Source: Azolla caroliniana
Taxonomy: Eukaryota > Plantae > Polypodiophyta
Assembly: GCA_043228905.1 (NCBI GenBank)
Contig: JBHGNT010000001.1
Location: 15,500,001 to 15,564,000, forward strand
Reading direction: 5' to 3'
DNA: 64,000 nucleotides
Positions 8,100 through 38,156 of the stretch are shown here, one piece after another; position 1 is the first letter of the stretch, and each line of letters opens with the position of its first letter. A program made the translations under genes and the position numbers. The notes below the pieces were generated by a model. The model was not told the origin of the DNA. It ran no database searches and worked only from the letters and a program-made list of their open reading frames with translations.

Positions 8100-9840
8100 T
8101 TTGGCAACAACTATGACATCCTCAATAAACAATCTATTCTTACCATCATCTAACATATTACATGTTAGCCACTCCACAACATCATGTGGATTTTGTAACT
8201 TCGCACCTTTATTATCCAACTGCTCGCTTGTAAGAGCGCACTTGATCACAACCCACGCGCCATCATGCTATCCCTTTCCATGTCTAGACCCAAAGTAATT
8301 TCATTGCATCCTAATGTTGGACAATGACATGTATCTGGGCGTTTTGCATGAGAGCTAGCTAACAAACATAGTTAGTGTATCACTGGTAGCCAACAATTCT
8401 TTAGATGACTTAAACCATAATTAGTACTAATGCACGAGATGAAACAATACTAAGTTATACATTAGTACTAATCCGTTAGAGAGGACAGTACTAAGTTATA
8501 AATTAGTACTAATGCACGAGAGAGGACAATACTAAGTTATAAATTAGTACTTGTGCATGTGGATCACAATACTAAATTGTAAAATAAGGGTACTTTACCA
8601 GGCCTATACCATAATCAGTACTTGTGGATGTGAGATGATAGTACTAAGTTCAAAAATAAGGGTACTTTACAAGGGTTAAACCATAGTCAGTACTTGTGCA
8701 CGTGTGAGGACAATATGTAGTTATAAATTAAGGATACTTTAAAAGACTTACACCATACTTAGTACTTATGCATGAGGGAGGGCAATACTAAGTTGTAAAT
8801 TAAGGATAGATTACAAGGCATGAACCTTAATTAGTACTTGTGCATCTGGGAGGCCAGTACTAAGTTGTACATTAAGAATACTTCATATAGCTATTACCAT
8901 AATCAGTACGGGTGCATTTAGGAGGACCGAACTAAATGACCAATAAGTTTAGATTCACATTTCATGACAATACAAAGTTGTAACATGAAAATCCTAAACA
9001 TGACCACTTCTAGTGATGGACATGATAGGATGATATTAAGTTGTTATTAAGAACACTAAAACATTCAATGACTAGAAAATAAGTACACACGCAAAAGGGA
9101 GTACAATAATAGGATGTTCAATCCGAACACTAGTAGGAGAATTACTAATTGTATTTTATAGAAACATTTTTTATGAGTGTTCATAGAATATTTGTATTGG
9201 TAGGAAACTAAAGCAATAGGTAAAGAACTATGAAGTATTACCAAACTAGACTTTCATTTATAAGTACTAGACATATGTATTAAAAATCACCTTGCAATGA
9301 AGTAGAAGGATTGGGCTACCTTAAAATGCAAGGCAACACCATCGGACCAGGCCCAATGACGATGAACACCCAGGAACAATAAAATTATGTGGTGAAGCTT
9401 AAAACAATGTTGAACAAATAGGGTAAGTGTATCATGCTTTTTATCATTTGAAATGTAGAATATTGATTTCTGATGTAACTTACCATTTCCTCTCCAGTAG
9501 CAAATATGTACAAGCATTGTACATTGCTCATTATACCAATGCATTGACTGAACCTCATTTTGAACTTTAAACGTATAATTCTCTGCAAAGTCAATAATAG
9601 ATACCATTACATCTTGTGGTAAGTTATTTATACATTACTTAAACTGTGAATTCTGCCAATAACTCCTAGAGTTATGTGGAATGAACTCCCCAAATTGCTT
9701 CTTAAACTCTGAGACAAGGGTAGTAGCACATGTATCCTTATATACTTCCTACATACACTTACTAACGAGACCCTTACCTATATTTTCTATCAAATACTCG
9801 AAATATTTCCATTTCACAATATGAGAGTTATCTTTTGATG
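8100..9840 (-). pseudogene. Intron-containing Sola2-like DDD transposase (exons about 9840-9291 and 8334 to about 8100)
   Basis: Exon 1 has DFAENY, QSMHW, SNDKKHD and WSDG motifs. A GT..CAG intron (9290-8335) joins in frame (GCA AG|A TAC) to exon 2, which reads (W*)NYFGSRHGKG(*)HDGA..VIK. Several premature stops. Confidence 0.75.
8417..8940. repeat. Minisatellite array: about three 41-bp units followed by about five 72-bp units sharing an AGTACT...CAATACTAAGTT core
   Basis: Repeated units read directly. The array lies inside the predicted transposase intron. Confidence 0.85.
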
Positions 9841-11432: not shown

Positions 11433-14085
11433 TGTCATGCCTTTCGGCACCGGATCATTGTGTGAGTCGGGTGGGAACCGCTGGGGTTTTCTACGAATAG
11501 ATTGCAAGATGAAGATATGAAACTCATGAATCCCACGAGTATAATGTATTAATTTGATACTTAGATTGTAAGAGAGAAATAGATGGTCAAATCGTGAATC
11601 CCACGAATATTTTATATTAATCAACCTTTATAAAAAATCAACAACCATATACATCTTTTCTCTCTTCCTTATATAGTGATGGAAGAGGCTAAGCATAGCA
11701 TCATGCTTTTTCCTAAAGTGTTCATGCACACTAGATGTGCATGAGTTGCCTTTTTCAACCATGCTTTTTTATTTCCTAAATATAGTGCTCATGCACACTA
11801 GATGTGCATGAGTAATTGGCTTGCGTTTTTCTTCCAAATAAAGTTCTCACGCACTCTAAAAGTGCATGATTTACTTTTTTGTAAAAATAGGCGTAAATAT
11901 AGCTCTTATACCTATTAAATTTATATTTAGATTACTTATGATAAGTTAGTGCAATGGTAAAGTTTGGGTTTGTTTACATGGAGGTATAGGGTTCAAATCT
12001 TGCCCTATGCATGTAACAATATTTTTTAATATTTTCTTTTATTTATTTATGCATACTTAAATCGGATATATTTTTTACATATTTCACATAGTGTGCAAAT
12101 TACACTACGACAGTCACCCCCTCCAAACCCGCACATCCTCCGGTATGTGCCGAAGTTCCTGATGCTTGTTATTCGCCTTCATCCGTAGCACTCTATGATT
12201 CTCCCCTTATGTCGATTATCAATTGTAGTCCACTTTCTTCCCTTTCCACATCACCACGATCTTTGTCCGATTGCTCCTCTTTGTCGATCTTGTCTAAGCT
12301 TACATAAGGTTCGTCGTTAGTCTGCTTCTTGAAAATATTCACCTGTTTCCCCACTATAGGCACCTGTAGTACTGTTCCATCTACGCATAGTTAGCAAGTT
12401 CCGTTGTTGAAATCTTTTTGAACCTCGTATGGCCCGAACCACCTTTTAGCAAACTTTTGTATTGTTGTATGTTGATGATTCAAACTACTGTCATAGACAA
12501 TCACCCAATCTCCTTCTTCAATCTTCCGTGATCGTAGTCGATGCTTTGTGTCATAACGACTTTTGTTCCGGAATCACGCTTCCTGTTGTCGGCGTGTTGC
12601 TTCCGCTAGTTTTCGTATCCGGACCGCTACTAGTTCTTCCCGGCTCATTTCTTCCATCCACGGTAGTAGTGTCCATGTTGCAATTGTGGTTTCCGTCGGC
12701 ATTACCGGTGCTTGTCCGGTCATAAGTTCGGCTGGCATATAACCGGTCACGGAACTATGCGTCGTGCGATCCGCCCATAGTGCATACGGAAGCATCTACG
12801 ACCAAACCTTCACCTTTTCGTCGCATGCTTTTGCAAGTGCTTTAACAATTGGACTATGTCCTCGCTTGATCTTTCCGTTGGCTTCCGGATTGTATGTCGT
12901 AGTTAGTGTTAAGTGTACTCCATGTTTGACGAAGAATTCCCTAGCTTTATCAGAGTTAAGTTCTCCCTGATCCGCAATCACTTGTCCTACGCACCCGTAC
13001 CTACAGAACACTTCTTCCAAGAGAAATTGGCATACTGCGGAACATGTTTTCCTCCGTACTGCCCGTCCTTCTACTTGGTTTGTTAGATCTTCGCGGGCTA
13101 ATACCAAGTACTTCTTTTGTCCAATCCCGGTTGGCATGGCCCCAATGTCGACCATCCATTGGAAGTTGATTGTCAGTGAGAATGTTGGATGTAATTCATC
13201 TTGTTGTCGAACTCCGGAGTAGATTTGACATTTCTCACAGCTTTCTGTGAACTCCGCTACATCTTTGTACATATTCTTCCACCAATATTTTTGTTTGATC
13301 TTCGCAAATGTTGCCCATTTTCCCCGATGTCCAGCCCAATTGGATTCATGAAATTCGGACATCATCTAGTTTTGTTGCTCTTTTGTTCCGACTACCTGTA
13401 GTGGTATACCATTTGGTCTTTTCGGCTCCCTCTAGATTAATCCATTGTTCAAGAAAAACTTATGGATTTTCCACTTCTTACTTCGGATCTCGGCTCTCTT
13501 TTCTTTATTGTCCGATGATTCCTCGATTTCTCGTAGCACTTTCCCGACCAGCAAACTTTTTCACTCGTATTCTTCTTCCCGGAATTCTCGGATTACATTC
13601 ACCCGGCATATGTGCTCCGAAGTAAAGTAGTTTTCGGAAACTTCTTCATTATCGAATTCAGCTATGTCGTCTCCGAACTGTGCCCTTACTAGCATATCTG
13701 CTACCGTGTTGTCTTTTCCAAAGATGTGTCATATCTCCAGATTAAGCGACTTTACATATGCAATCCATCTTAGCATAGCCACATGCGGTATCATGCAACA
13801 CCGCATCATCCCGAGTATTAGAAGACAATCCGTTTCGATCACTACTTCGGCTCCAATTAAGTAATCTTGATCTGATTTTATCGCTGACACAACTCCCCAT
13901 AATTCTCTTTTAACTTGTGCATATTCGCGTTGCCTTTCGTTGAGAACCTTTGCTCCGAATCGGATTGGATATCGTGAACCATCCGAATCCTCTTGATTGA
14001 TGACCCATCCGATCCCGGTTGGACTTGTATCAACCGTTACTATAATCGGTCGGTCATAGTTCGGCTTCTTAAGTGCTTCTGCCTT
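11433..14085 (-). mobile_element. Truncated non-chromovirus Gypsy (Phygy/Selgy-like): 3' LTR 11433-12112, PPT, integrase and RNase H remnants
   Basis: TGTCATG...TACGACA LTR and minus-strand PPT GGAGGGGG. Integrase ORF 12796-13365 (GHRG, CEKCQ, YNPEANG). Same family as 32145-37530. Confidence 0.85.
11937..12011 (+). promoter_or_regulatory. tRNA-like Pol III A-box/B-box module inside a Gypsy LTR (antisense to the element)
   Basis: TAGTGCAATGG (11947) and GGTTCAAATCT (11990) at tRNA-like spacing. Ends CCCTATGCA, with a T-run shortly downstream. Confidence 0.6.
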
Positions 14086-24718: not shown

Positions 24719-25303
24719 ATGGTTCAGCAGTCCATCTCATATGGCTCCTCCGCCACTACACTCGCCACTACACTCGCTTATCTACTGTTGCTGGCCGCTC
24801 CTTTGACCACCACTGTATCGGCTCGACGGAAGCCTCCCCAGGGACCAGAGACCTTCAGCTTCTACATCCACAACCAGGTCTACAACCCGGCCGTCAACAA
24901 CTCCGTCTTCGACTCCGTGTACAGCGCCGGACCCTTCAACTTCAGCCAGCCCAACCCCACCAACTTCGGTGTCCGCTCCACATTCGAGAACCCCATCACT
25001 CCCGACGCCTCCCCGGACTCGGAGCCCATCGGCGTTGCCCAGGGCTTCTGGATCTTCAACTCACAGAAGGGTTACGTCCTCATGCACATATTCACTGCCA
25101 CCATCACGTCGGGGCCATACACGGGCACCATCGCCATCATGGGGCAGGAGGATGAGTCTCTCGACAACCGGACATTGGTGGTGGTCGGGGGAACCGGAGA
25201 CTTCCTCGCGGCTCGTGGTGCCGCCATCTCCAAGCGGGTTGTCATCGACAACGTTGCGCCCGCGCACTGGACCCTCTCCTTCGACTTGGACCTCTATTAT
25301 TGA
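24719..25303 (+). CDS. Dirigent-family protein (secreted, intronless, 194 aa)
   Basis: Hydrophobic signal peptide. Dirigent motifs FYIHN, FG..STFENPIT..SPDSEPIGVAQG, GTIAIMG and RTLVVVGGTGDFLAARG. N-glycosylation sequons and a GC-rich intact ORF. Confidence 0.9.
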   Translation: MVQQSISYGSSATTLATTLAYLLLLAAPLTTTVSARRKPPQGPETFSFYIHNQVYNPAVNNSVFDSVYSAGPFNFSQPNPTNFGVRSTFENPITPDASPDSEPIGVAQGFWIFNSQKGYVLMHIFTATITSGPYTGTIAIMGQEDESLDNRTLVVVGGTGDFLAARGAAISKRVVIDNVAPAHWTLSFDLDLYY

Positions 25304-27223: not shown

Positions 27224-29830
27224 TGTTGGTCCACATGATCCAGTAGTTGTAACTGATGTTCTATATACTTATAAATACATTAAATGAACACAATAATAAC
27301 ACACATATGCAATTATATTGTCTAAACTTTTGCTTATAACTCTTATGAGAACTCAAGCAAAATCAAGATTACTCTTGCTCCACATCAATTCTGATGATTT
27401 AGTTTTGTTATGCTTGATGTTCTTGGACCACAACCAACATTCTCCAATTGAAAATTGCATTTAAATAGTACTAAGAAAGAGATAGATATCAAGAGAGAGA
27501 GAGAGAATGAGGGAAAACAAATGAATTAAAAAAAAAAATCCACAAAGAAAAACAAATATATTATTATTATCAACACCCTAATTGTTACAACAGGTGGTGG
27601 TGGCTTTGTAAGGGACCACCATTGAGGTGGTTTCCTTCATCTTGATAAGAAAGTAACTAATATTATTTCGCTTATTACAACAACTAAGAAATTTTCGAGA
27701 AGTGTAGATTCTCATCTTCATCTTTAATTACAACAATTAATCCAACTTGCTTGCAACAAATATTGTGCTTAGAATTGTCGAAGAGGTTTAATTAGAATAT
27801 TTGCCCACATATGATGAATGAGAGCAAACTTTAGTTCTATGTTCTTTGTTTCAATGAGATCACGAAGAAAATGATGTTCCAAGGCCACATGACGTATGTT
27901 GTCACTCATTGTCAGACTATTAGGTAGCTTGATGCATGCTTGATGATCATAAAACAAAGTCACTATTGAAATAATAAATAGGTTGAAATTCTTCAAGCAT
28001 TGATTTAATCCAAATGCCTTCTTTAACAGCTAGAGTCGTTGTTACATATTCAACTTTGGTGGATTATAATGCTATAATATATTGTTTCTTTGGCTTCCAA
28101 GAAATTGTAACACCAACTAGTGTATAGACATAGCCAAATGTTCTCCATCCCAATTGGAATCAATCCAATCAATTACCTAATAAGAGGGGTTTGTCCATTC
28201 TTGCACAAGTGAGGCCGACTCAGATTGTGTGGCTGAGTAAGTCAATGCACAATATTGAGTATACTTCAAATATCGTAGTAAATGTTTCACAGCAATCCAA
28301 TACTTTGGTCCTGGATTAGCTATGAAATAAGAAAGAAAAACAACAACAAAATAAATATGTGGACATCGGCAACTCACTAAATATCTAATACATCCAAGGA
28401 TTTGTTTACATGCTACATCCTTCACTTCAAAAATCTCCCAACTTTTTTGGACAATCATCATTAGAGAGTTTACTGAGAGAGGTAAGATTAGTATGGAACA
28501 TGTCAAATCTTTGGAGAATAGAGGTAATATATTGAGTTTGTGATATAGAGCTAGCATGATTTGATCTATTTTTAATTACTTTAATGTCAAGGAAATGTAT
28601 CATAAGCCCTAAATCAATGGTAGAAAAAACACATGCAAGTTCCTTCTTTGCAATTGCTAGATAAGATTTAGTGTTGGAGATCAAGGGCAAATCATCAACA
28701 TAGACACCTATGCTAGCAAATTTGGATTTGGTTTTCTAACATAGATATTTGGCTCATGTTGTTAAGACAATGATATCCAACCTTAATGAGAAAAAAGTGA
28801 AGTTGACAAACAAATGTTAGATGACTTGGATCTTCAAAAATTTCTAGTTGTTGCTGATAAAGTTCTTCATCCAGATCCCCATTAGGAAAGGCAATTTGTA
28901 CATCCAAGTGGTGCAACTCTAGATCATGTTGAGCAACAAGAGCAATGAGCATTCGAGAACCACGTATTCTAAGTGTTAGACCAAATGTATCTTGAAAATC
29001 AATACATGGAACTTGAGAAAAACCATTTACCAACAACATGAGCCTTAAAGAGAATTGGATTGCCATTACCATCTTGCTCAATTTGTAAGACCAATTTGGA
29101 ACCAATTATGTGACGATCTTTTGGAGGCTCAACGAGGGTCCACATATCATTTTTAATTAGATCCTTCATCTCTTCCTCCATAGCCATTCTCCATTTGATA
29201 GAAACAGATCCTAAGAGTCCTTCTTTGGGTGTTAGATTTGTGTCATCACTAAGGATTGGAATATCCTCTTGTTGTATGTAAGCTTCATGGTCCATGTTGA
29301 CAAAATGTGCTTCCATTTAATCAAGTTGTTCATAGATACTATTTAGAGATAGGTACATAGTTGGAGGAGAAGATGAATTCAGAAGATAACAATGCTTGTG
29401 TTATTACAGATAGATGAGCAATGTGTATTTCTCCAGGAATTAGGAAAAAGAGTTCAACAATTCGAGGTTGGGGAGATGGAGGACAAGAAGAAAATTTAGT
29501 TAGTGGATGACGATTGACCTTTGACTTCTAAATCGCCACACAAATACGTGAAGTAGAGGATGAACCACTATGAGAATTATTAATATTGGAGATGGTTGAG
29601 GAATATGGCTGGAAGTGGGCAGGGGTAGGTAATAAAGGAGATAAATTTGAAGGAAGTGGAGAAGAAAGCTTTGAAGAAATATGTGATTAAAGAAAATTCT
29701 TTTTATTTGTGGATTGTAGAGCTTGTACACCTTGTAGCCCGAACCTTTTCCATATACAACAAAAATTGATTTAGTAGCTCTTGGATCTAGGGCCACACGT
29801 TCGCGTTCACAAGTGGAAGGATTGGGCATT
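27224..29830 (-). mobile_element. Old degenerate Copia remnant (integrase end, RT, RNase H, probable 3' LTR about 27224-27575)
   Basis: Fragments LDPRATKSIFVVY, HHLDVQIAF.NGDL.EE, KHLLRYLK and RHVALEHHFLRD, with many stops. Confidence 0.7.
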
Positions 29831-30857
29831 CCACTTGTAGAATCTTCTTGAAACTATCCAAATATACCCACTCTACAAAAATTGAATGCATTAGTATCAC
29901 ATGTTCCACAACTTGATTAGAATTTGCAAATATCAAAATACATGATAGGTCTATGAGTGGAGATCATTAGAAATCATGGAAGTTTGGACGTGCTGATAAG
30001 TTAATGTAGGCATAATAAAGTTCAACAATGGCTCAATATGTCACTAATGTGCGACATTGGTAACACTAAGTTAAAGACTTATATTAATTTGGTAAGTTCT
30101 ACAAAAATATGAGGTGTACTTGTAACCATACTAATAAAATGAGTTATAATTTATACTTTGACCCATACTTGCATGTATATAATTGTGGACAATGTAGGAT
30201 AGTGCACTTTAGGATAATGTGATTGGAATAACTAACTTATTAAAGTATTTAATACTTGTATTTAAAGTTGATCTAATCTATTCCTCAGTTTGTTCGTATG
30301 GGATCAAACCATATGTATATAATTGTGGACAATGTAAGACAGTGAAATGTGGTAGAAATAACAAACCTATTAAGGCTTTCATACTTGTATTATACATCTA
30401 TTGCTTAGGTGATTCACACGGGATCAAACTCTAAACGATAACGCTAGTGGAACGACAAGCGTATAAAAACATGCGGATAACGCTAGTGGAACCATTATCA
30501 ACACACTACACAATCTAAGCAACAATGGAAAAGAAACATAATAGTTTTAACAATAGAAGACAAAGATCCATAATAACAACATGGACACTCATGGCAACAA
30601 TTCTACGACCATGTTATGTTAAGGTAAACTTTGACCAAAATCAGCCTAAATTTAAACTAATTCATGTTTCTTCATAAATTTGGTGGTCAGCAATGCACAC
30701 GGTGAAACCAATGTCATAAGTCTACTAACCAAGTATATAAAAATAAAATTGAAACATATAGAAGATTATAAAGAATAGAATCCACCAAGTAATACCCCAA
30801 ATTTGTATTAATAATGTGAAATCCAAACAATACATTTCGCGTTTTTAAAAGAGTCTA

Positions 30858-32144
30858 TTACATAGCAATCAAATCGTCAATGTCATTTTCTTCATCATCT
30901 TGTATAGAAGTCTCTTCGGCTATACATGCATTGGCTTCCCCTGTTAGCCGAGCCAACAAAATATCTTCTATAAGCTCATCATCAAGCTCTATTAGCTCCC
31001 CCGGCTCCCCGGCTCACGGAGGAATAGGCTCTCGCGAAGCAAGTTGAAACCTTTCAATATCATCGAGGTTCTTTGCATTGACCTCCTCCTCCTGGTTTGG
31101 GCACTCCCACAAAGCCTTAATGCTCATGTTTATAAATTTAACTTGCTCCTCGTCCTTCTCCAATGCAACTGTGTTTCTAAAGAGCTTCAATGCACATGTA
31201 GACGTCGTTCCTGTAAAGAAAGTAACAACAAGAATTAGTTCTCAAACAAAAAAGATTCAGTATTGGTGGTCTCAAGATCGTTACCCTAGTTCGAGGAATA
31301 CTTGTGCCAGAAAAGAGTTCTAATATCCAGTCTCCTTCGACAGAAAACATCTCGATCAAGCGCATCATAAGTCGTTGAGGTTTTTGGTATGGGTTGACAA
31401 GTCCCCGTTCTATCGTGGTGACATGTCGCAATTTCCGTGTCACTGCTGGATATACCAACAGATTTGAACCTCCCACTTCATTAGAATGCTCCTTGATTCT
31501 TTGTTTCTTAATTTCATCGAAGTAGCCAACCGCGATGTATTCAATGTCATTAACAAACCGAAAGGTTGACCCTCTATTTACATTGGTTTTTATCTTATAA
31601 CAAATATTACATCGAGTTAAGAATAGATTGAACAATCTTAAGAAAGACAATATAGTGAATGAGACCTATAAATAATCCTTACCATGCAAGATTCTCGATG
31701 CCATGGCAATGAGATCTCAAAGCTTGAGCTACCGAGTACCCTTGGTCCATACTATGAAAGACAACTATTCTCCACAAGGATGCAGTCGTTAGCTCAGCAA
31801 AATCCTTGACCATCTTCTCCAACTATTTAAACCTAAACGGTTCATCGTCGTATGATGACCTTGCCATTCGAAATCCGTAAGGAATATCCGCAATCATTAG
31901 CGTATATTCCTTCTTTGGCACTTTTTGGATCATGTCAACGACATCGCCGCAAACCACATTGTAGTAAAGATCTCTTGTAATATCTTTTTTGTGGCTAAAT
32001 TTTTTGAAGGAGCCATCTTCCTCCATTTCGTACGCCTTGACTAAGCGACGATCCTTTTCTTTTCTGGCTCTCTCGAGATGTGCAAGGAGGGATGTCGGGA
32101 AATCGTGTATATCCTTAACTTCTCCTTGTTTCTTGCCATGACAG
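30858..32144 (-). pseudogene. Spliced beta-class N6-adenine/N4-cytosine DNA methyltransferase (N6_N4_Mtase-like), 5'-truncated by a Gypsy LTR
   Basis: Exons 32144-31683, 31594-31302 and 31210-30858. They give GDVVDMIQKVP...LMIADIPYG (motif IV), W-IKTN...DIEYI, NPYQKPQRLMMRLIEMFSVEGDWILELFSGT and TTSTCALKLFRNTVALEKD (motifs X-I-II). Introns are 88 and 91 bp. Two premature stops and one damaged acceptor. Confidence 0.8.
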
Positions 32145-35100
32145 TGTCGTGCCTTTCGGCACAGGATCGTTTGTGTGAGGCGGGTGAGAACCGCTGGGGT
32201 TTTGGACCAGGAGAAAGAAGAATATGAGATAATGTTAGTTAGGAAGAGATTGTAGGAAGAAGATATGAAACTCGTGAATCCCACGAGTATAATGTATTAA
32301 TGGGTATTTACTTTGGAAGAGAGAATTAGATGGTAAAATTGTGAATCCCACGAATATTTTGTATTAATCAATCCTTATCAAAAATCAACAACCACTATCC
32401 ATCTTCCTTTCTTCCTTTTATAGTGTTTGAAGAGTCTAAGTTTATCACATGCAAGCATCATGCTTTTCCTAACTTTAGTTTTCATGCACACTGCATGTGC
32501 ATGATTAGCTTTCTATCCCATCTTTTCTTTTAACTCGACTGTGTATGCATGAATAAATTTTTGTACCATGCATATCTAGAATATTTACATGGGATAAAGT
32601 TTAGTTTAACTTTAAAATTCATAGTGTGCTAATATAGTGGTAAGGTTGGGTTTTGTCTACGTGGAGGTACAGGGTTCGAATCCTGCCCTATGCACGTAAT
32701 AAATATTTTCAATATTTTATTTTTATTTATTATATGTACTCTAAATCGGATATAGTGTTTTACATATTTCACTTAGTGTGTGATTCACACTACGACACTC
32801 GCCCCCTTTGAACCCGCACATCCTCCGGTATGTGCCGAAGTCCCTGATGCTTATTATTCACCTTCATCCGAAGCTTCCTCCGATTCTCCCCTTAAGTCGA
32901 CTATAAGTTGTAATCCACTTTCTTCGCTTTCCACATCACCACGATCTTCGTCCGATTGCTCCTCCTTGTCGGTCTTATCTAGGATCACATAGGGTTCTTC
33001 ATCAATCCGCTTTTTGAAAATCTTCACCCGTTTCCCGGCTATAGACACTCGTAGTATCGTTCCATCCAACTCTCATAGTCGGTAAGTTCCATTGTCGAAA
33101 ACTTTCCGAACCTCGTATGGCCCAAACCACCTTTTCGCAAACTTCCACATCGTTGTATGTTGATGATCCAAACTACTGTCGTAGACAATCACCCAATCTA
33201 CTTCTTCAATCTTCCGCGATCGTAGTCGGTGCTTTGCGTCGAATCGGCTTTTATTCCAGAATTGCACTTCTTGTTGTCGGCGTATTGCTTCCGTTATGTC
33301 TTCATGTCTTCCCTCTAGTTGTCGTATCCGGACTGCTAGTAGTTTTTCCCGGCTCATCTCTTCCTTCCACGGTAGCACTGTCCATGTCGCGATTGCGGTT
33401 TCCGTTGGCATTACCGGTGCTTGTCCGGTCATGAGTTCTGCCAGGATGTACCGGTTACGGAGCTATGCATCGTCCGATCCACCCATACTGCATATGGAAG
33501 CATCTGTGGCCAATCCTTCACCCTTCCGTCGCATGCTTTGGCAAGTGCTTTCACGACCGGACTATGTCCTCATTCGATCTTCCTGTTGGCTTCCGGATTG
33601 TATGCCGTTATCAGTGTTAACCGAACTCCATGTTTGGCGAAGAATCCCCTAGCTTTGTCAGAGTGCATATGGGAGCATCTGAGGCCAATCCTTCACCCTT
33701 CCGTCGCATGCTTTCACAAGTGCTTTCACAATCAGAGTATGTCCTCGTTCGATCTTCCTGTTGGCTTCCGGATTGTATGCCGTTGTCAGTGTTAACCGAA
33801 CTCCATGTTTGGCGAAGAATCCCCTAGCTTTGTCAAAGTCAAGTTCTGCCTGATCCGCAATCACTTGTCCTACGCACCCGTACCTACAAAACACCTCCTC
33901 CAAAAGAAATTGGCATACCGCAGAACACGTTTTCCTCCGTAGCGCTCGACCTTCTACTTGGTTTGTGAGATCTTCCCGAGCTAACACCAAGTATTTCTTT
34001 TGTCCGATCCCGGTTGGCATGGCTACAATGTCGACCATCAATTTGAAGTTCATTGTTGGTGAGAATGTCGGATGTAACTCATCTCGGTGTCGAACTCCAG
34101 AGTATATTTGACACTTCTCGCAGCTTTCCGTGAACTCCGCTATATCTTTGTACATGTTCTTCCACCAATATTTTTGTTTGATTTTCATAAAAGTTGCCCA
34201 TGTTCCTCGATGTCCAGCCCAATCGGATTCGTGAAACTCGGATATTATCCGGTTTCGTTGCTCTTTCGTCCCGACTACCCGAAGTGGTATGCCATCCGGT
34301 CTTTTCGGCTCCCTCCATATTAATCCATTTTTCAAGAAGAACTTTCGAACTTGCCGCTTCTTACTTCAGATCTTGGCTCTCTTCTCTTTAATGTCTGATG
34401 ACTCCTTGATTTCTTGTAGCACTTTCCTGATCAGCAAGCTTTCCCCCTCGTATTCTTCTTCCCAGAATTTTCGGATTGCGTTCACCCGGCATATGTGCTC
34501 CGAAGCAAAGTAGTCTTCGGAAACTTCTTCATTATCGGATTCGGTTATGTCGTCTCCAAAACGTGCCCTTTATAGCATATCCGCTACCGCGTTGTCTTTT
34601 CCGGAGATGTGTCGTACCTCCGGATTAAGCGACTTAACATATGCAATCCATCTTAGCATAGCCACATCCGGTATCGTGCAACACCGCATCATCCCGAGTA
34701 TTGGAAGACAATCCGTTTCGATCACTACTTCGGCTCCGATCAAATAATCTTGATCCGATTTGATTGCCGACACGACTCGCCATAATTCTCTTTTGACTTG
34801 TCCATATCCGTGTTGCCTTTCGTTGAAAACCTTTGCTCCGAATCGGATCGGATATCGCGAACCATCCAAGTCGGCTTGATTGATGACCCATCCGATTCTG
34901 GTTGGACTTGTGTCCACCGTTGCTATGATCGGTCGGTCATAGTTCGGCTTCTTTAGTGCTTTTGCCCTCCATAGTGATTTCTTGAGCTTCTTCACGGCTT
35001 TGCTATGCTCCGGTTTCCATTCGAACTTCTTACCCGTCCGCAACAAGTGATAGAGTGGGTCCACAATATGTGGACAGTGTGGAATCCATATGTGATAGAA

Positions 35101-37530
35101 TGCACATGCTCCAAGAAACCTTCGGACTTTGGATTGTGACTCGCATACTTCTTTCATAGCTTGAATCACATCGATCTTGGTTGGTGACAGTCTTCGGCCG
35201 TAGGGCCCACATAGTTGTCCGACTACCAATATTTCTTCTTGCCTGAATGTTGATTTCTCAGTGGAAAGTGTTAGGTGCACATCTTCTAACTTTCGAAGCA
35301 CTTTCTCGCAATCACAAATATGGTCGACTACGAACTTTCGGCATCCCCGATCATCCATAGTTTCATCTTTTTCTTCTATCGCCCATCCTTTCATCGGAAT
35401 GTCATCTAGGAATGGCATCGTTATCTCCGGAATGCAATCTCGAAGCACCTTGTTCATCGCATTCATCATATGTACCACCGAGTTTGTCGCTCCTTGTGGT
35501 AGTGTGCACGTTCGAACTAATCCTATCGGTGTTCGCATGGTGGTGATGTCTCGGCTCTCCACAACTAGTTGGAATTGGGCATACCCCGAGTATAGGTCTC
35601 CGATGGAGTATATCACACGACCAGCAAATGCTTCCGCAAATTCATCCACTATCGGACCGACTCTGGAGTTCCGGATCGTGACCTTGTTCACCGGTTGCAA
35701 GTCTTGGATAAATCAAAGTGACCCATTCTTCTTCGGAACCGTAAACCATCGATTTGAGTACAGAGCATTTGATGGCTCTAGAATCCCCATCGCCACCTTC
35801 TCCTTGAGCAAGTCAATGATTTTCGGAATATGCACCCATGGCACCGGAATCGGCTTCAGGTTCCACGGCACATGGTCAATCATGAATATCACCATCGGCT
35901 CCACTATCTTCGGGTCACCGCATCCTATTTCTTTCGATGTAAATGCAAATGCTCTCCCATGTCGCGCTAGCATCCCACAGAATCGTTCTTCTTCATTCTT
36001 TAATAGGAACCCACCTCCACCGATCCGAAGTTTCTTCCGGGTCTCATCCGTGAAGCCATGTCCGATATCCATGGACTTCCGAAGTGTCGGATCCCCCGAG
36101 ACTTCTTTCCTCTTTTGTTCGCTATCGGCGGGTAACGGTCGCGCAACCGGTTTCACTTTCTTCTCCACGGTCTTGTATTTCGTACATACCATTGCTTCTT
36201 CTTTGCGAAGCGCATCCGGCCCCATTTTCATAATGATCTCGTACATCTCGACCGATTCCACCGGGACTACCTGGTCTCCTTGGCTTGTATCGTCCGCGAG
36301 CTCTTCAAGTCGTTGTAGCGTGCTCCCATAGAACACTTCTTCAACTATTCCCACGATTTCTTCGTCTTCTTTTATTATTGATGTCGACCGTAGCTTACCC
36401 TCCATTTTTCGGTATTCTTTCTTCATTCCTCCGGTTACGGCCGTGTATGTAGATACCCCATCCAGACCGATTCGTACTTGTCTTGCTCCGAGAATTTCCT
36501 TCCTGTGTGGGGTATCAGGGCTTCTCGGACTATCACTTCCCCACTCTGCAATAGTCCGCTCTAAAAATCCATCCTTGTTTGGGACAAGAGCTCTCTCTTG
36601 TTCCTTTCATGATTTGCCGGCACCGTTAGGAATTGGACAGATTTCCCTCCGTTTTGGTTCTGAATTTGTGCAAAAGCCGCACCGCTATCGAGCACCTTTG
36701 TCTCCATCTGTGAAGCCATGATAAAGGGTTGCCCAAGGATCACGGAGTGAGAGACCTCGTCTTGCACAAAGAAATTTTGGTCGATCTCAACATCGCTAAT
36801 CTTCACCGTCACATCCGGACAAGCCGCAAATACATCTTCCGTTGCTTTAGTGGTCGCCCGGATCTTCCATCCATGATTGGTGTTAATAGGCCACTTCCCC
36901 TTCCGGTAGAACTCCTTAGACATCAAATTGATCTCCGATCCGTGATCAATCAATGCTAGCACGGGCTCTTTCATGTTGCCGATTCGGACCGGAGTCTCCG
37001 TAGGTGCACGTGCCTAGTGTAGCCTTCTGTAGTGGGAGTTCGGAATTTCGTACTCCACTTCGGTATTGTTCATCAGAATGGTATTTGCATTCACCATCGG
37101 CGCATTTTCCTCCGTAGTTTGTCTTTTTCTTTTTACGAGATCCACAAGAAGATCATGGAACTCCTCTTTTGCTATTCCAAGTAGTTCCCAAAGCGAAAAA
37201 TCTACCCGGTTGTCGAGGATTCTCTCCTCAAACACTTTCTTTATGTCCGTCTGTTGCTCGATGTCCGAAGTGAGCTTGAATGCCGGAATTGTCTTTTCTT
37301 TTTCCTTCCCTCCGGAGTTCCTGCTTTCCGGTGTCTTCGATGGTCTGGCCACATCATCCGTGTGCCATCTTCTCTCGTCTACATACACTTCATGCAATTG
37401 ACATAGCGCATGTACGCTATTCTTATCTATGGGGCACTCCCATCCCGTAGCTTCCCGAATACATTCCACGGCACTTCGGATTTCATCATGGTCGGCTTTC
37501 TTAGAAATTTCTAGCACTTCCATGTTTATA
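32145..37530 (-). mobile_element. Non-chromovirus Gypsy (Phygy/Selgy-like): 3' LTR 32145-32797, integrase, RNase H, RT, protease and partial gag
   Basis: RT 34570-35700 (LPQGATNS, FLDD), protease 36561-36974 (LIDHGSEIN), integrase 33658-34335 and gag 37014-37530. PPT lies next to the LTR. 5' end missing. Confidence 0.9.
32620..32694 (+). promoter_or_regulatory. tRNA-like Pol III module in a Gypsy LTR (best-preserved copy)
   Basis: A-box TAATATAGTGG (32630) and perfect B-box GGTTCGAATCC (32673) inside a CAGG/CCTG T-arm. 3' end CCCTATGCA, with TTTT about 12 nt downstream. Confidence 0.7.
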
Positions 37531-37536
37531 ATGTAA

Positions 37537-38156
37537 AGGCTTACCATTATACTAACACATCATAAGTGTTAAAAAGTAGATATCCCACATAAAAAGGTAA
37601 AGTTCACATATATTTTCTAGGAAAAAGCTTTAGTTAGAAGAAAAACGCATAATACAAAAAAGCTACACATGCACATTTAGCATGCATGAACACTATAGTC
37701 GATAAAAACGCATAATGTTAGAAAAAGCATGATCACTTTTAGAAGAAGCATGTTAGAGAAAGCATATAGTCTATAGATAGAGAAAGCATGGATTACTAAG
37801 ACTGTCTCATCACTATATAAGGATTGGGAGCAAAATGTAATAAAGGGGGAGAGAAATTTATGGATGAAAGATCATTTGGGTTCAAAAATAATGATTAATA
37901 AAATAAACTATGCTTGTGGGATTCACAAGTTTTCTATATCTTTCTTTTCCAATCTATTCCAAAGTATAATTAGGGTTACTTATTAATAAATAAATAAATA
38001 AATAAAAACTATATTCGTGGGATCCACGAATTTCTATTTCTGTTTCTTATAATCTATTTATATTCTTATTAGCCTTAAAACTCTCCTCCTCCTAGTCCAG
38101 AACCCCACCGGTTCCCACCCGCCTCACGCAACGATCCGGCACCGAAAGGCACGACA
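37537..38156 (+). mobile_element. 5'-truncated LTR of the same Gypsy family in the opposite orientation
   Basis: Ends ...GGCACCGAAAGGCACGACA, the reverse complement of the 11433 and 32145 termini. Begins inside the tRNA-like module; the A-box complement is at 37540-37554. Confidence 0.8.

Follow-up and report, generated by a model that had tools for sequence, protein, structure and literature searches.

A methyltransferase gene fragment in the window

We analysed a 64-kb stretch of the Azolla caroliniana genome (contig JBHGNT010000001.1; the whole stretch is hereafter the window, and all positions are numbered along it), which carries a gene fragment on its minus strand at 30858-32144. The three exons of this fragment together form the catalytic domain of a beta-class amino-DNA methyltransferase and are separated by introns of 88 and 91 bp. 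Comparison with related loci indicates that the fragment very probably forms part of the right-hand 2.35 kb (29795-32144) of a cut-and-paste DNA transposon bounded by terminal inverted repeats (TIRs), here present as a dead copy, in which the methyltransferase is an accessory gene. A spliced beta-class amino-methyltransferase in three minus-strand exons with introns of about 90 bp had already been recognised in an initial annotation made from the sequence alone, and its coordinates proved exact. The features of the locus are as follows (L010 and L011 are related loci described below).

32144-31683, minus strand: exon A, cut at its 5' end, with catalytic motif IV (DIPY, 31888-31877) and a premature TAG (31823-31825)
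31682-31595, minus strand: intron 1 (88 bp), donor GT intact, acceptor AG mutated to AA (31596-31595)
31594-31302, minus strand: exon B, with the W-x-K-x-N and E-x-I segments, NPYQKP (31395-31378) and the start of S-adenosylmethionine (SAM) motif I, FSGT (31314-31303)
31301-31211, minus strand: intron 2 (91 bp), GT..AG intact
31210-30861, minus strand: exon C, with the remainder of motif I (TTSTC), a conserved ALEKD segment, an acidic tail and an in-frame TGA (31014-31016)
30860-30858, minus strand: natural stop codon TAA of exon C, the end of the coding sequence
29839-30857, minus strand: non-coding subterminal region 3' of the methyltransferase stop; nucleotide homology of 79% to L010 and L011 is unbroken over 29795-32143
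29795-29838, minus strand: putative right transposon terminus, a terminal inverted repeat reading ACACGTTCGC... on the plus strand, with a conserved hairpin at 29809-29838 (10-nt arms)
32145-33664, strand not assigned: Gypsy long terminal repeat (LTR), starting with TG at 32145, with a 76% identical copy at 11433-12956

Similarity searches were made with single exons or with natural annotated relatives, and the three window exons were never joined into one translation. The match to Pfam PF01555 (N6_N4_Mtase) that had been anticipated for the spliced translation was obtained with exon B alone (E 4.7e-5, 23.9 bits). This score falls slightly below the whole-protein cut-off of 26.7 bits because exon B is a fragment, and full-length relatives exceed the cut-off in Ginkgo (65.7 bits) and in Adiantum (33-50 bits). 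The Ginkgo protein Gb_37443 (670 amino acids) matched the three exons in order and in register (residues 350-446, 448-546 and 546-638; E 9e-42). The motif order in the window copy is permuted, motif IV in exon A preceding SAM motif I at the junction of exons B and C.

To place the lesions of the window copy, 24 related metagenome copies were aligned with it, and the direction of each change was set by reference to L005, the nearest intact copy (91.6% identity), and four outgroups. The window branch carries 47 specific substitutions, compared with 9 on the L005 branch, and C>T or G>A changes account for 24 of these. The earlier description of the lesions as mostly transitions is supported. The stop in exon A arose from CAA by two changes (31825 C>T and 31823 A>G, giving TAG at 31825-31823); the initial annotation had guessed CAG as the ancestral codon. 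The acceptor of intron 1 was lost through a window-specific G>A at 31595, AG being kept in 24 of 24 related copies, and a G>A at 31302, the final base of exon B, replaces the second Gly of the FxGxG SAM loop, which is intact in close relatives, with Arg. These three lesions had been proposed correctly in kind, whereas the fourth, the TGA in exon C, derives from TTA through a T>G at 31015 and not from CGA as supposed. The ratio of nonsynonymous to synonymous substitution rates (dN/dS) between the window copy and its nearest intact relative is 0.38. With its two stop codons, its lost intron 1 acceptor and Arg for Gly in the SAM pocket, the window copy is, as read from its sequence, inert and does nothing.

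Both ends of the fragment lie against retroelements. Every related locus loses homology to the window at 32143, though many extend kilobases further upstream, and the LTR starts at 32145, so that the claim that a Gypsy LTR cuts off the 5' end of the gene was borne out. We identify 32145-33664 as an LTR because it starts with TG, recurs at 11433-12956 and abuts Gypsy open reading frames (ORFs) for integrase, reverse transcriptase and protease (33658-37547, minus strand). The pattern of third-codon-position variation among the relatives extends up to 32143, and the LTR cut therefore falls inside an exon and not in an intron. On the other side, the flank immediately below 29795 (29500-29794, minus strand) translates as the C-terminus of a Copia integrase. 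As this lies outside the terminus, a Copia element would have been the insertion site of the DNA transposon; the corresponding upstream half of the integrase was not located. Read from the sequence, the order of insertion is Copia, then the DNA transposon, then Gypsy.

Termini, transposase and complete elements

A scan of metagenome contigs returned 80 loci (named L0xx), and these carry the evidence for a transposon. Eleven of them (L010, L011, L015, L016, L019-L024 and L026) end at one and the same terminal sequence, corresponding to window position 29795, beyond which their flanks are unrelated; a motif scan found near-matches to this terminus in four more. Three of the loci (L021, L023 and L024) are 99.4-99.7% identical over up to ~4.9 kb to the terminus and have different flanks. 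Complete elements of ~7.7 kb were found in L041 (696-8421) and L042 (3145-10951), each with TIRs of ~30 bp, and both TIRs of both elements begin with the same 10-mer as the window terminus. The TIRs were seen only in the L041/L042 subfamily, and no left-end TIR with the window-type terminal 22-mer was found in the loci of the window-type subfamily.

An open ORF of 818-872 amino acids with a PF25273 DUF7869 match (E ~1e-52) is present in L022, L041 and L042. It lies on the strand opposite the methyltransferase gene, upstream of it and divergent from it, and we take it as the gene of the transposase. This protein matches only Pfam DUF7869 and is 58% identical between subfamilies; a literature search on DUF7869 found nothing relevant. 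The Adiantum locus L004 has only retroelement genes beside the methyltransferase and no transposase context, and the gene model at locus L003 spans 61 kb and is unusable for context. The element is assigned to the DNA transposons because of the terminus shared among loci with unrelated flanks, the near-identical copies at different sites, the TIRs and the divergent DUF7869 transposase. What had been raised at the outset as a gene 'possibly carried by a transposon' has thus gained support from its relatives.

Some further observations concern the elements themselves. Elements of the window-type subfamily have, 14 bp in from the terminus, a conserved hairpin with 8-10-nt arms and a loop of 10 nt (window 29809-29838, L011 4856-4885, L022 8587-8612), which is a candidate protein-binding site. 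In L040 (1187-5946) the two genes share one strand, with the transposase downstream of the methyltransferase, which may reflect an inversion, rearrangement of this copy or a chimeric assembly. In L071 an element terminus (193-214) is found ~1 kb upstream of another methyltransferase fragment (1212-1340), which suggests that members of the family have inserted within or next to one another. Within the window, a Sola2-like transposase gene at 8100-9840 is unrelated and has no similarity to the DUF7869 transposase.

Distribution and selection

An exhaustive HMMER search with exon B across 1.84 billion representatives returned only 57 matches. The named ones belong to Ginkgo biloba and two Adiantum ferns, all of them plants, and the matches that were checked are intron-split or annotated as plant. 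No flowering plant is among the named relatives in this search. The contrast with flowering plants drawn in the initial annotation did not hold up; the named relatives are only ferns and Ginkgo. Copy numbers are high in places, with more than 25 dispersed and variably truncated copies in Adiantum nelumboides, often mis-fused to retroelement domains, and at least five copies in Ginkgo.

The intact paralogues that had been expected to exist were found: in 20 of the 24 related metagenome copies none of the three methyltransferase exons is interrupted, lengths are conserved and both introns keep GT-AG. Every related copy in which this motif could be read, which leaves out only the frameshifted L032, has DIPYG; NPYQKP and FSGT-TTS are likewise general, two decayed copies excepted. 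In intact copies, a large exon upstream of the methyltransferase exons encodes an N-terminal domain of ~240 amino acids, which is 47-48% identical between fern-type metagenome copies and Ginkgo and 32% for Adiantum P0039. Distant members of the family differ in motif IV: P0045 and P0036 (Logan contigs, L002) have D-L-P-R-G for D-x-P-Y-G, Ginkgo has D-I-P-H-G, and the aromatic residue is not conserved in the wider family.

Pairwise comparison of intact copies gave dN/dS values of 0.03-0.11 at synonymous divergences (dS) of 0.15 to >2 for all listed pairs but one, the exception being the near-identical pair L013/L001 (dS 0.06, dN/dS 0.33). Between subfamilies, identity is 75% in the N-terminal domain, 58-65% in the methyltransferase and 58% in the transposase; the methyltransferase and the N-terminal domain are conserved at least as strongly as the transposase. 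A low dN/dS in a transposon gene implies that only copies with a working protein left descendants. Purifying selection of this strength argues well, if indirectly, that the element gains something from the enzyme. Judged from these sequence comparisons, the case that the accessory protein helps the element to spread is indirect but strong, and the enzyme of the intact family copies probably works.

Enzyme class and base specificity

The family profile matched the N6-adenine methyltransferases MboIIA (9.5e-12), RsrI (1.5e-11) and CcrM (1.5e-7), whereas the N4-cytosine enzymes were reached at 2e-3 (rotifer N4CMT) and 2.2e-3 (PvuII). The fold was examined on a relative, using an AlphaFold2 (AF2) model of Ginkgo residues 335-640 with an overall predicted local distance difference test score (pLDDT) of 57 and a core of 75-89. 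The top 24 Foldseek matches of this model were all beta-class methyltransferases, at E-values from 4e-9 (CcrM) to 3e-6, and comprised the characterised N6-adenine enzymes CcrM, MboIIA, M.BceJIV, RsrI and M1.HpyAVI together with the putative methylase TTHA0409. The N4-cytosine enzymes PvuII and N4CMT ranked 25th and 27th.

Because of this ranking by profile and by fold, and because motif IV has Asp where Marchantia DN4MT1 has TSPPY (bioRxiv 10.1101/2021.02.12.428880), adenine-N6 is the better guess for the target and appears more likely than cytosine-N4, an assignment drawn from sequence and model that is weakened by the non-canonical position after the Asp.

Proposed model and alternatives

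We propose that a complete element of ~7.7 kb consists of two divergent genes, one for the DUF7869 transposase and the other an intron-containing accessory gene, in which a highly conserved and probably ParB-like N-terminal DNA-binding domain is fused to a beta-class amino-methyltransferase. One such transposon would have inserted into a Copia integrase gene. A Gypsy element would then have landed inside the first methyltransferase exon, leaving the N-terminal domain, the transposase and the left end no longer in the window, and the remainder would have decayed under C-to-T-biased mutation. Such a truncation is supported by protein searches, which detected no similarity to the transposase or the N-terminal domain anywhere in the 64-kb window, even at E 10. 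In the intact family, the protein may be an active SAM-dependent DNA methyltransferase, with adenine-N6 likelier than cytosine-N4 as its target. Its N-terminal domain may direct the methyltransferase to the element's own or nearby DNA, where methylation could aid propagation, for example by marking the DNA of the element or by opposing host silencing. Taken to its full extent, the model would have ferns, Ginkgo and perhaps other non-flowering plants hosting old and, in some lineages, recently active transposons with a working adenine-N6 (or cytosine-N4) methyltransferase, which we put forward tentatively, as a possibility somewhat short of probable.

Several observations weigh against parts of this model. 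The candidate target-site duplication TGTT/TGTT fits L041 and does not fit L042. The remainder of this copy was not located, a nucleotide similarity search across all 64 kb having found no trace of the lost upstream portion. As for the N-terminal domain, a profile search of the PDB gave no match, Pfam DUF6551 matched 5 of 10 members with a best E of only 0.006, and the top 8 Foldseek matches, although to ParB/Noc, had E-values of 0.2-1 and came from a poor AF2 model (pLDDT 59). The N-terminal domain of the accessory gene, described here as probably ParB-like, shows only a weak link to ParB in these matches. In motif IV, finally, the window and every readable related copy have D-I-P-Y, with Ile for the first Pro of the canonical DPPY, and the variants are D-A-P-Y in Adiantum, D-I-P-H in Ginkgo and D-L-P-R in two unplaced contigs, which places His or Arg at the aromatic position in the last two cases.

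These departures from the canonical motif, with Ile, Ala or Leu for the first Pro and His or Arg for the Tyr in Ginkgo and the two contigs, would fit a methyltransferase domain that is catalytically dead throughout the family, or one that has been repurposed as a SAM- or DNA-binding module or as an RNA or protein methyltransferase, and the methyltransferase domains of DIRS1 retrotransposons are likewise regarded as inactive (PMC4738411). However, in motif IV the Asp, the second Pro and the Gly that follows do not vary, and NPYQKP and FxGxG show little or no variation whether the copies come from ferns, Ginkgo or elsewhere, which is the pattern of a selected active site. We therefore consider a dead or repurposed domain unlikely, though it deserves more weight than the explanations that follow.

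The initial annotation had favoured a host gene, a writer of N6-methyladenine or N4-methylcytosine (6mA/4mC) akin to the Marchantia DN4MT1 and rotifer N4CMT enzymes. On this reading the window copy would be a relic of such a gene, and any link with a transposon would be incidental. The very strong purifying selection on the family would suit a host function, the family occurs in plants with swimming sperm (ferns and Ginkgo) as DN4MT1 does in Marchantia (bioRxiv 10.1101/2021.02.12.428880), and one or more copies could have been domesticated. Yet in at least 11 loci the distance from the gene to a common terminus is constant and the flanks are unrelated; it lies inside TIRs beside a transposase and recurs in near-identical copies at different sites, and the more than 25 dispersed copies in Adiantum nelumboides and at least 5 in Ginkgo point the same way. 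Its motif is DIPY and not the TSPPY (S-P-P-Y) of DN4MT1, and by profile the N4-cytosine enzymes (~2e-3) match ~1e9-fold worse than the adenine enzymes (~1e-11). A host writer thus seems very improbable, and this part of the initial annotation was not sustained.

That the gene is essentially prokaryotic, through recent horizontal transfer or bacterial or phage contamination, is barely credible: it has the fold and profile of bacterial beta-class methyltransferases and the PHROG DNA-methyltransferase families 67 and 498 match at 1e-27 and 2e-20, but it has two spliceosomal introns with GT-AG conserved in 24 copies, the window copy sits between plant Copia and Gypsy elements, every named match among the 57 to exon B is from a plant, no relative was found in 185,579 prokaryotic genomes, and a scan of the IMG/VR viral data gave two 60-amino-acid motif matches only and no close viral relative. 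The introns and the eukaryote-only match list argue instead for a long residence of the gene in eukaryotes, as far as sequence can tell, and the earlier view of the gene as a eukaryotic resident and not a contaminant agrees with the conserved introns and the plant-only named relatives.

Relation to known systems

The transposon interpretation has its closest parallel in a brown alga. A survey of Ectocarpus transposons (2025) described Sola1-1_Ec32, a giant 21.5-kb element with its transposase on one strand and a gene for a ParB-like plus N4C/N6A methyltransferase protein on the other. Like the element proposed here, it is a cut-and-paste transposon in which a prokaryote-type DNA-binding domain (a probable one in our family) and a methyltransferase are fused in a gene opposite the transposase, and the algal protein is proposed to bind the DNA of its own element and mark it. 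The two differ in host (brown alga versus land plants), in length (21.5 kb versus ~7.7 kb) and in the size of the protein (1104 versus ~650-700 amino acids). The likeness drawn here is one of design; the transposase of our family is assigned to DUF7869, and the window copy is only a dead terminal fragment. By this analogy, the family is a land-plant instance of a transposon design published for algae, and one in which selection on the methyltransferase is unusually clear. Our literature searches, whose coverage was incomplete, found no report of the ParB-methyltransferase transposon design in land plants, and a survey of adenine methyltransferases in eukaryotes published in 2015, which reports few N6A methyltransferases from land plants, has no such clade among them (PMC4738411).

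The bacterial N6-adenine enzymes CcrM, M.MboIIA, M.RsrI, M.BceJIV and M1.HpyAVI, which gave the best profile (1e-11 to 1e-7) and fold (4e-9 to 1e-6) matches, share with the family the permuted motif order, an NPxQKP-type segment and an FxGxG SAM loop. They are only 15-21% identical to it, however, and the family differs from them in having D-I/A-P-Y and not DPPY, introns, a eukaryote-specific N-terminal domain and no restriction-modification system. Marchantia MpDN4MT1a/b and the bdelloid rotifer N4CMT are likewise bacterial-type beta-class amino-methyltransferases resident in eukaryotes, but they are host genes with S-P-P-Y, whereas the family here is transposon-borne with D-I-P-Y. The DIRS1 retrotransposons also carry a methyltransferase-like domain on a eukaryotic mobile element; theirs, in contrast, belongs to a PCIF1-like group, lies inside a retroelement polyprotein and is the domain considered inactive (PMC4738411).

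If the model is correct, part of any 6mA/4mC signal in the genomes of ferns and Ginkgo would be written by transposons, possibly for self-marking or against silencing, and land plants would have their own version of something so far only proposed for transposons of algae. Very few DNA amino-methyltransferases are known from land plants, and claims of 6mA in plant DNA are disputed. The family offers a testable candidate source of DNA methylation other than 5-methylcytosine in non-flowering plants, and possibly a case of transposons manipulating epigenetic marks. The window copy itself is of value as a pointer to this family and as a dated example of nested insertion of a Copia element, a DNA transposon and a Gypsy element.

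Neighbouring features

The LTR that cuts the gene (32145-33664) and its copy at 11433-12956 have the same orientation and form one family of ~1.5 kb, with 76% identity between them. The first 150 bp of the LTR also match 38010-38156 in inverted orientation, so that the adjoining Gypsy element is without a clean second LTR in the window. A 175-bp unit is present in two tandem copies (93% identical) at 33484-33833, where the LTR meets the Gypsy integrase ORF. Further along the window, an intact and intronless dirigent-family gene (PF03018) of 194 amino acids lies on the plus strand at 24719-25303. Its relatives, at 86-99% identity, were found only in ENA/JGI metagenome contigs, which suggests that the host plant or its close kin is common in those samples.

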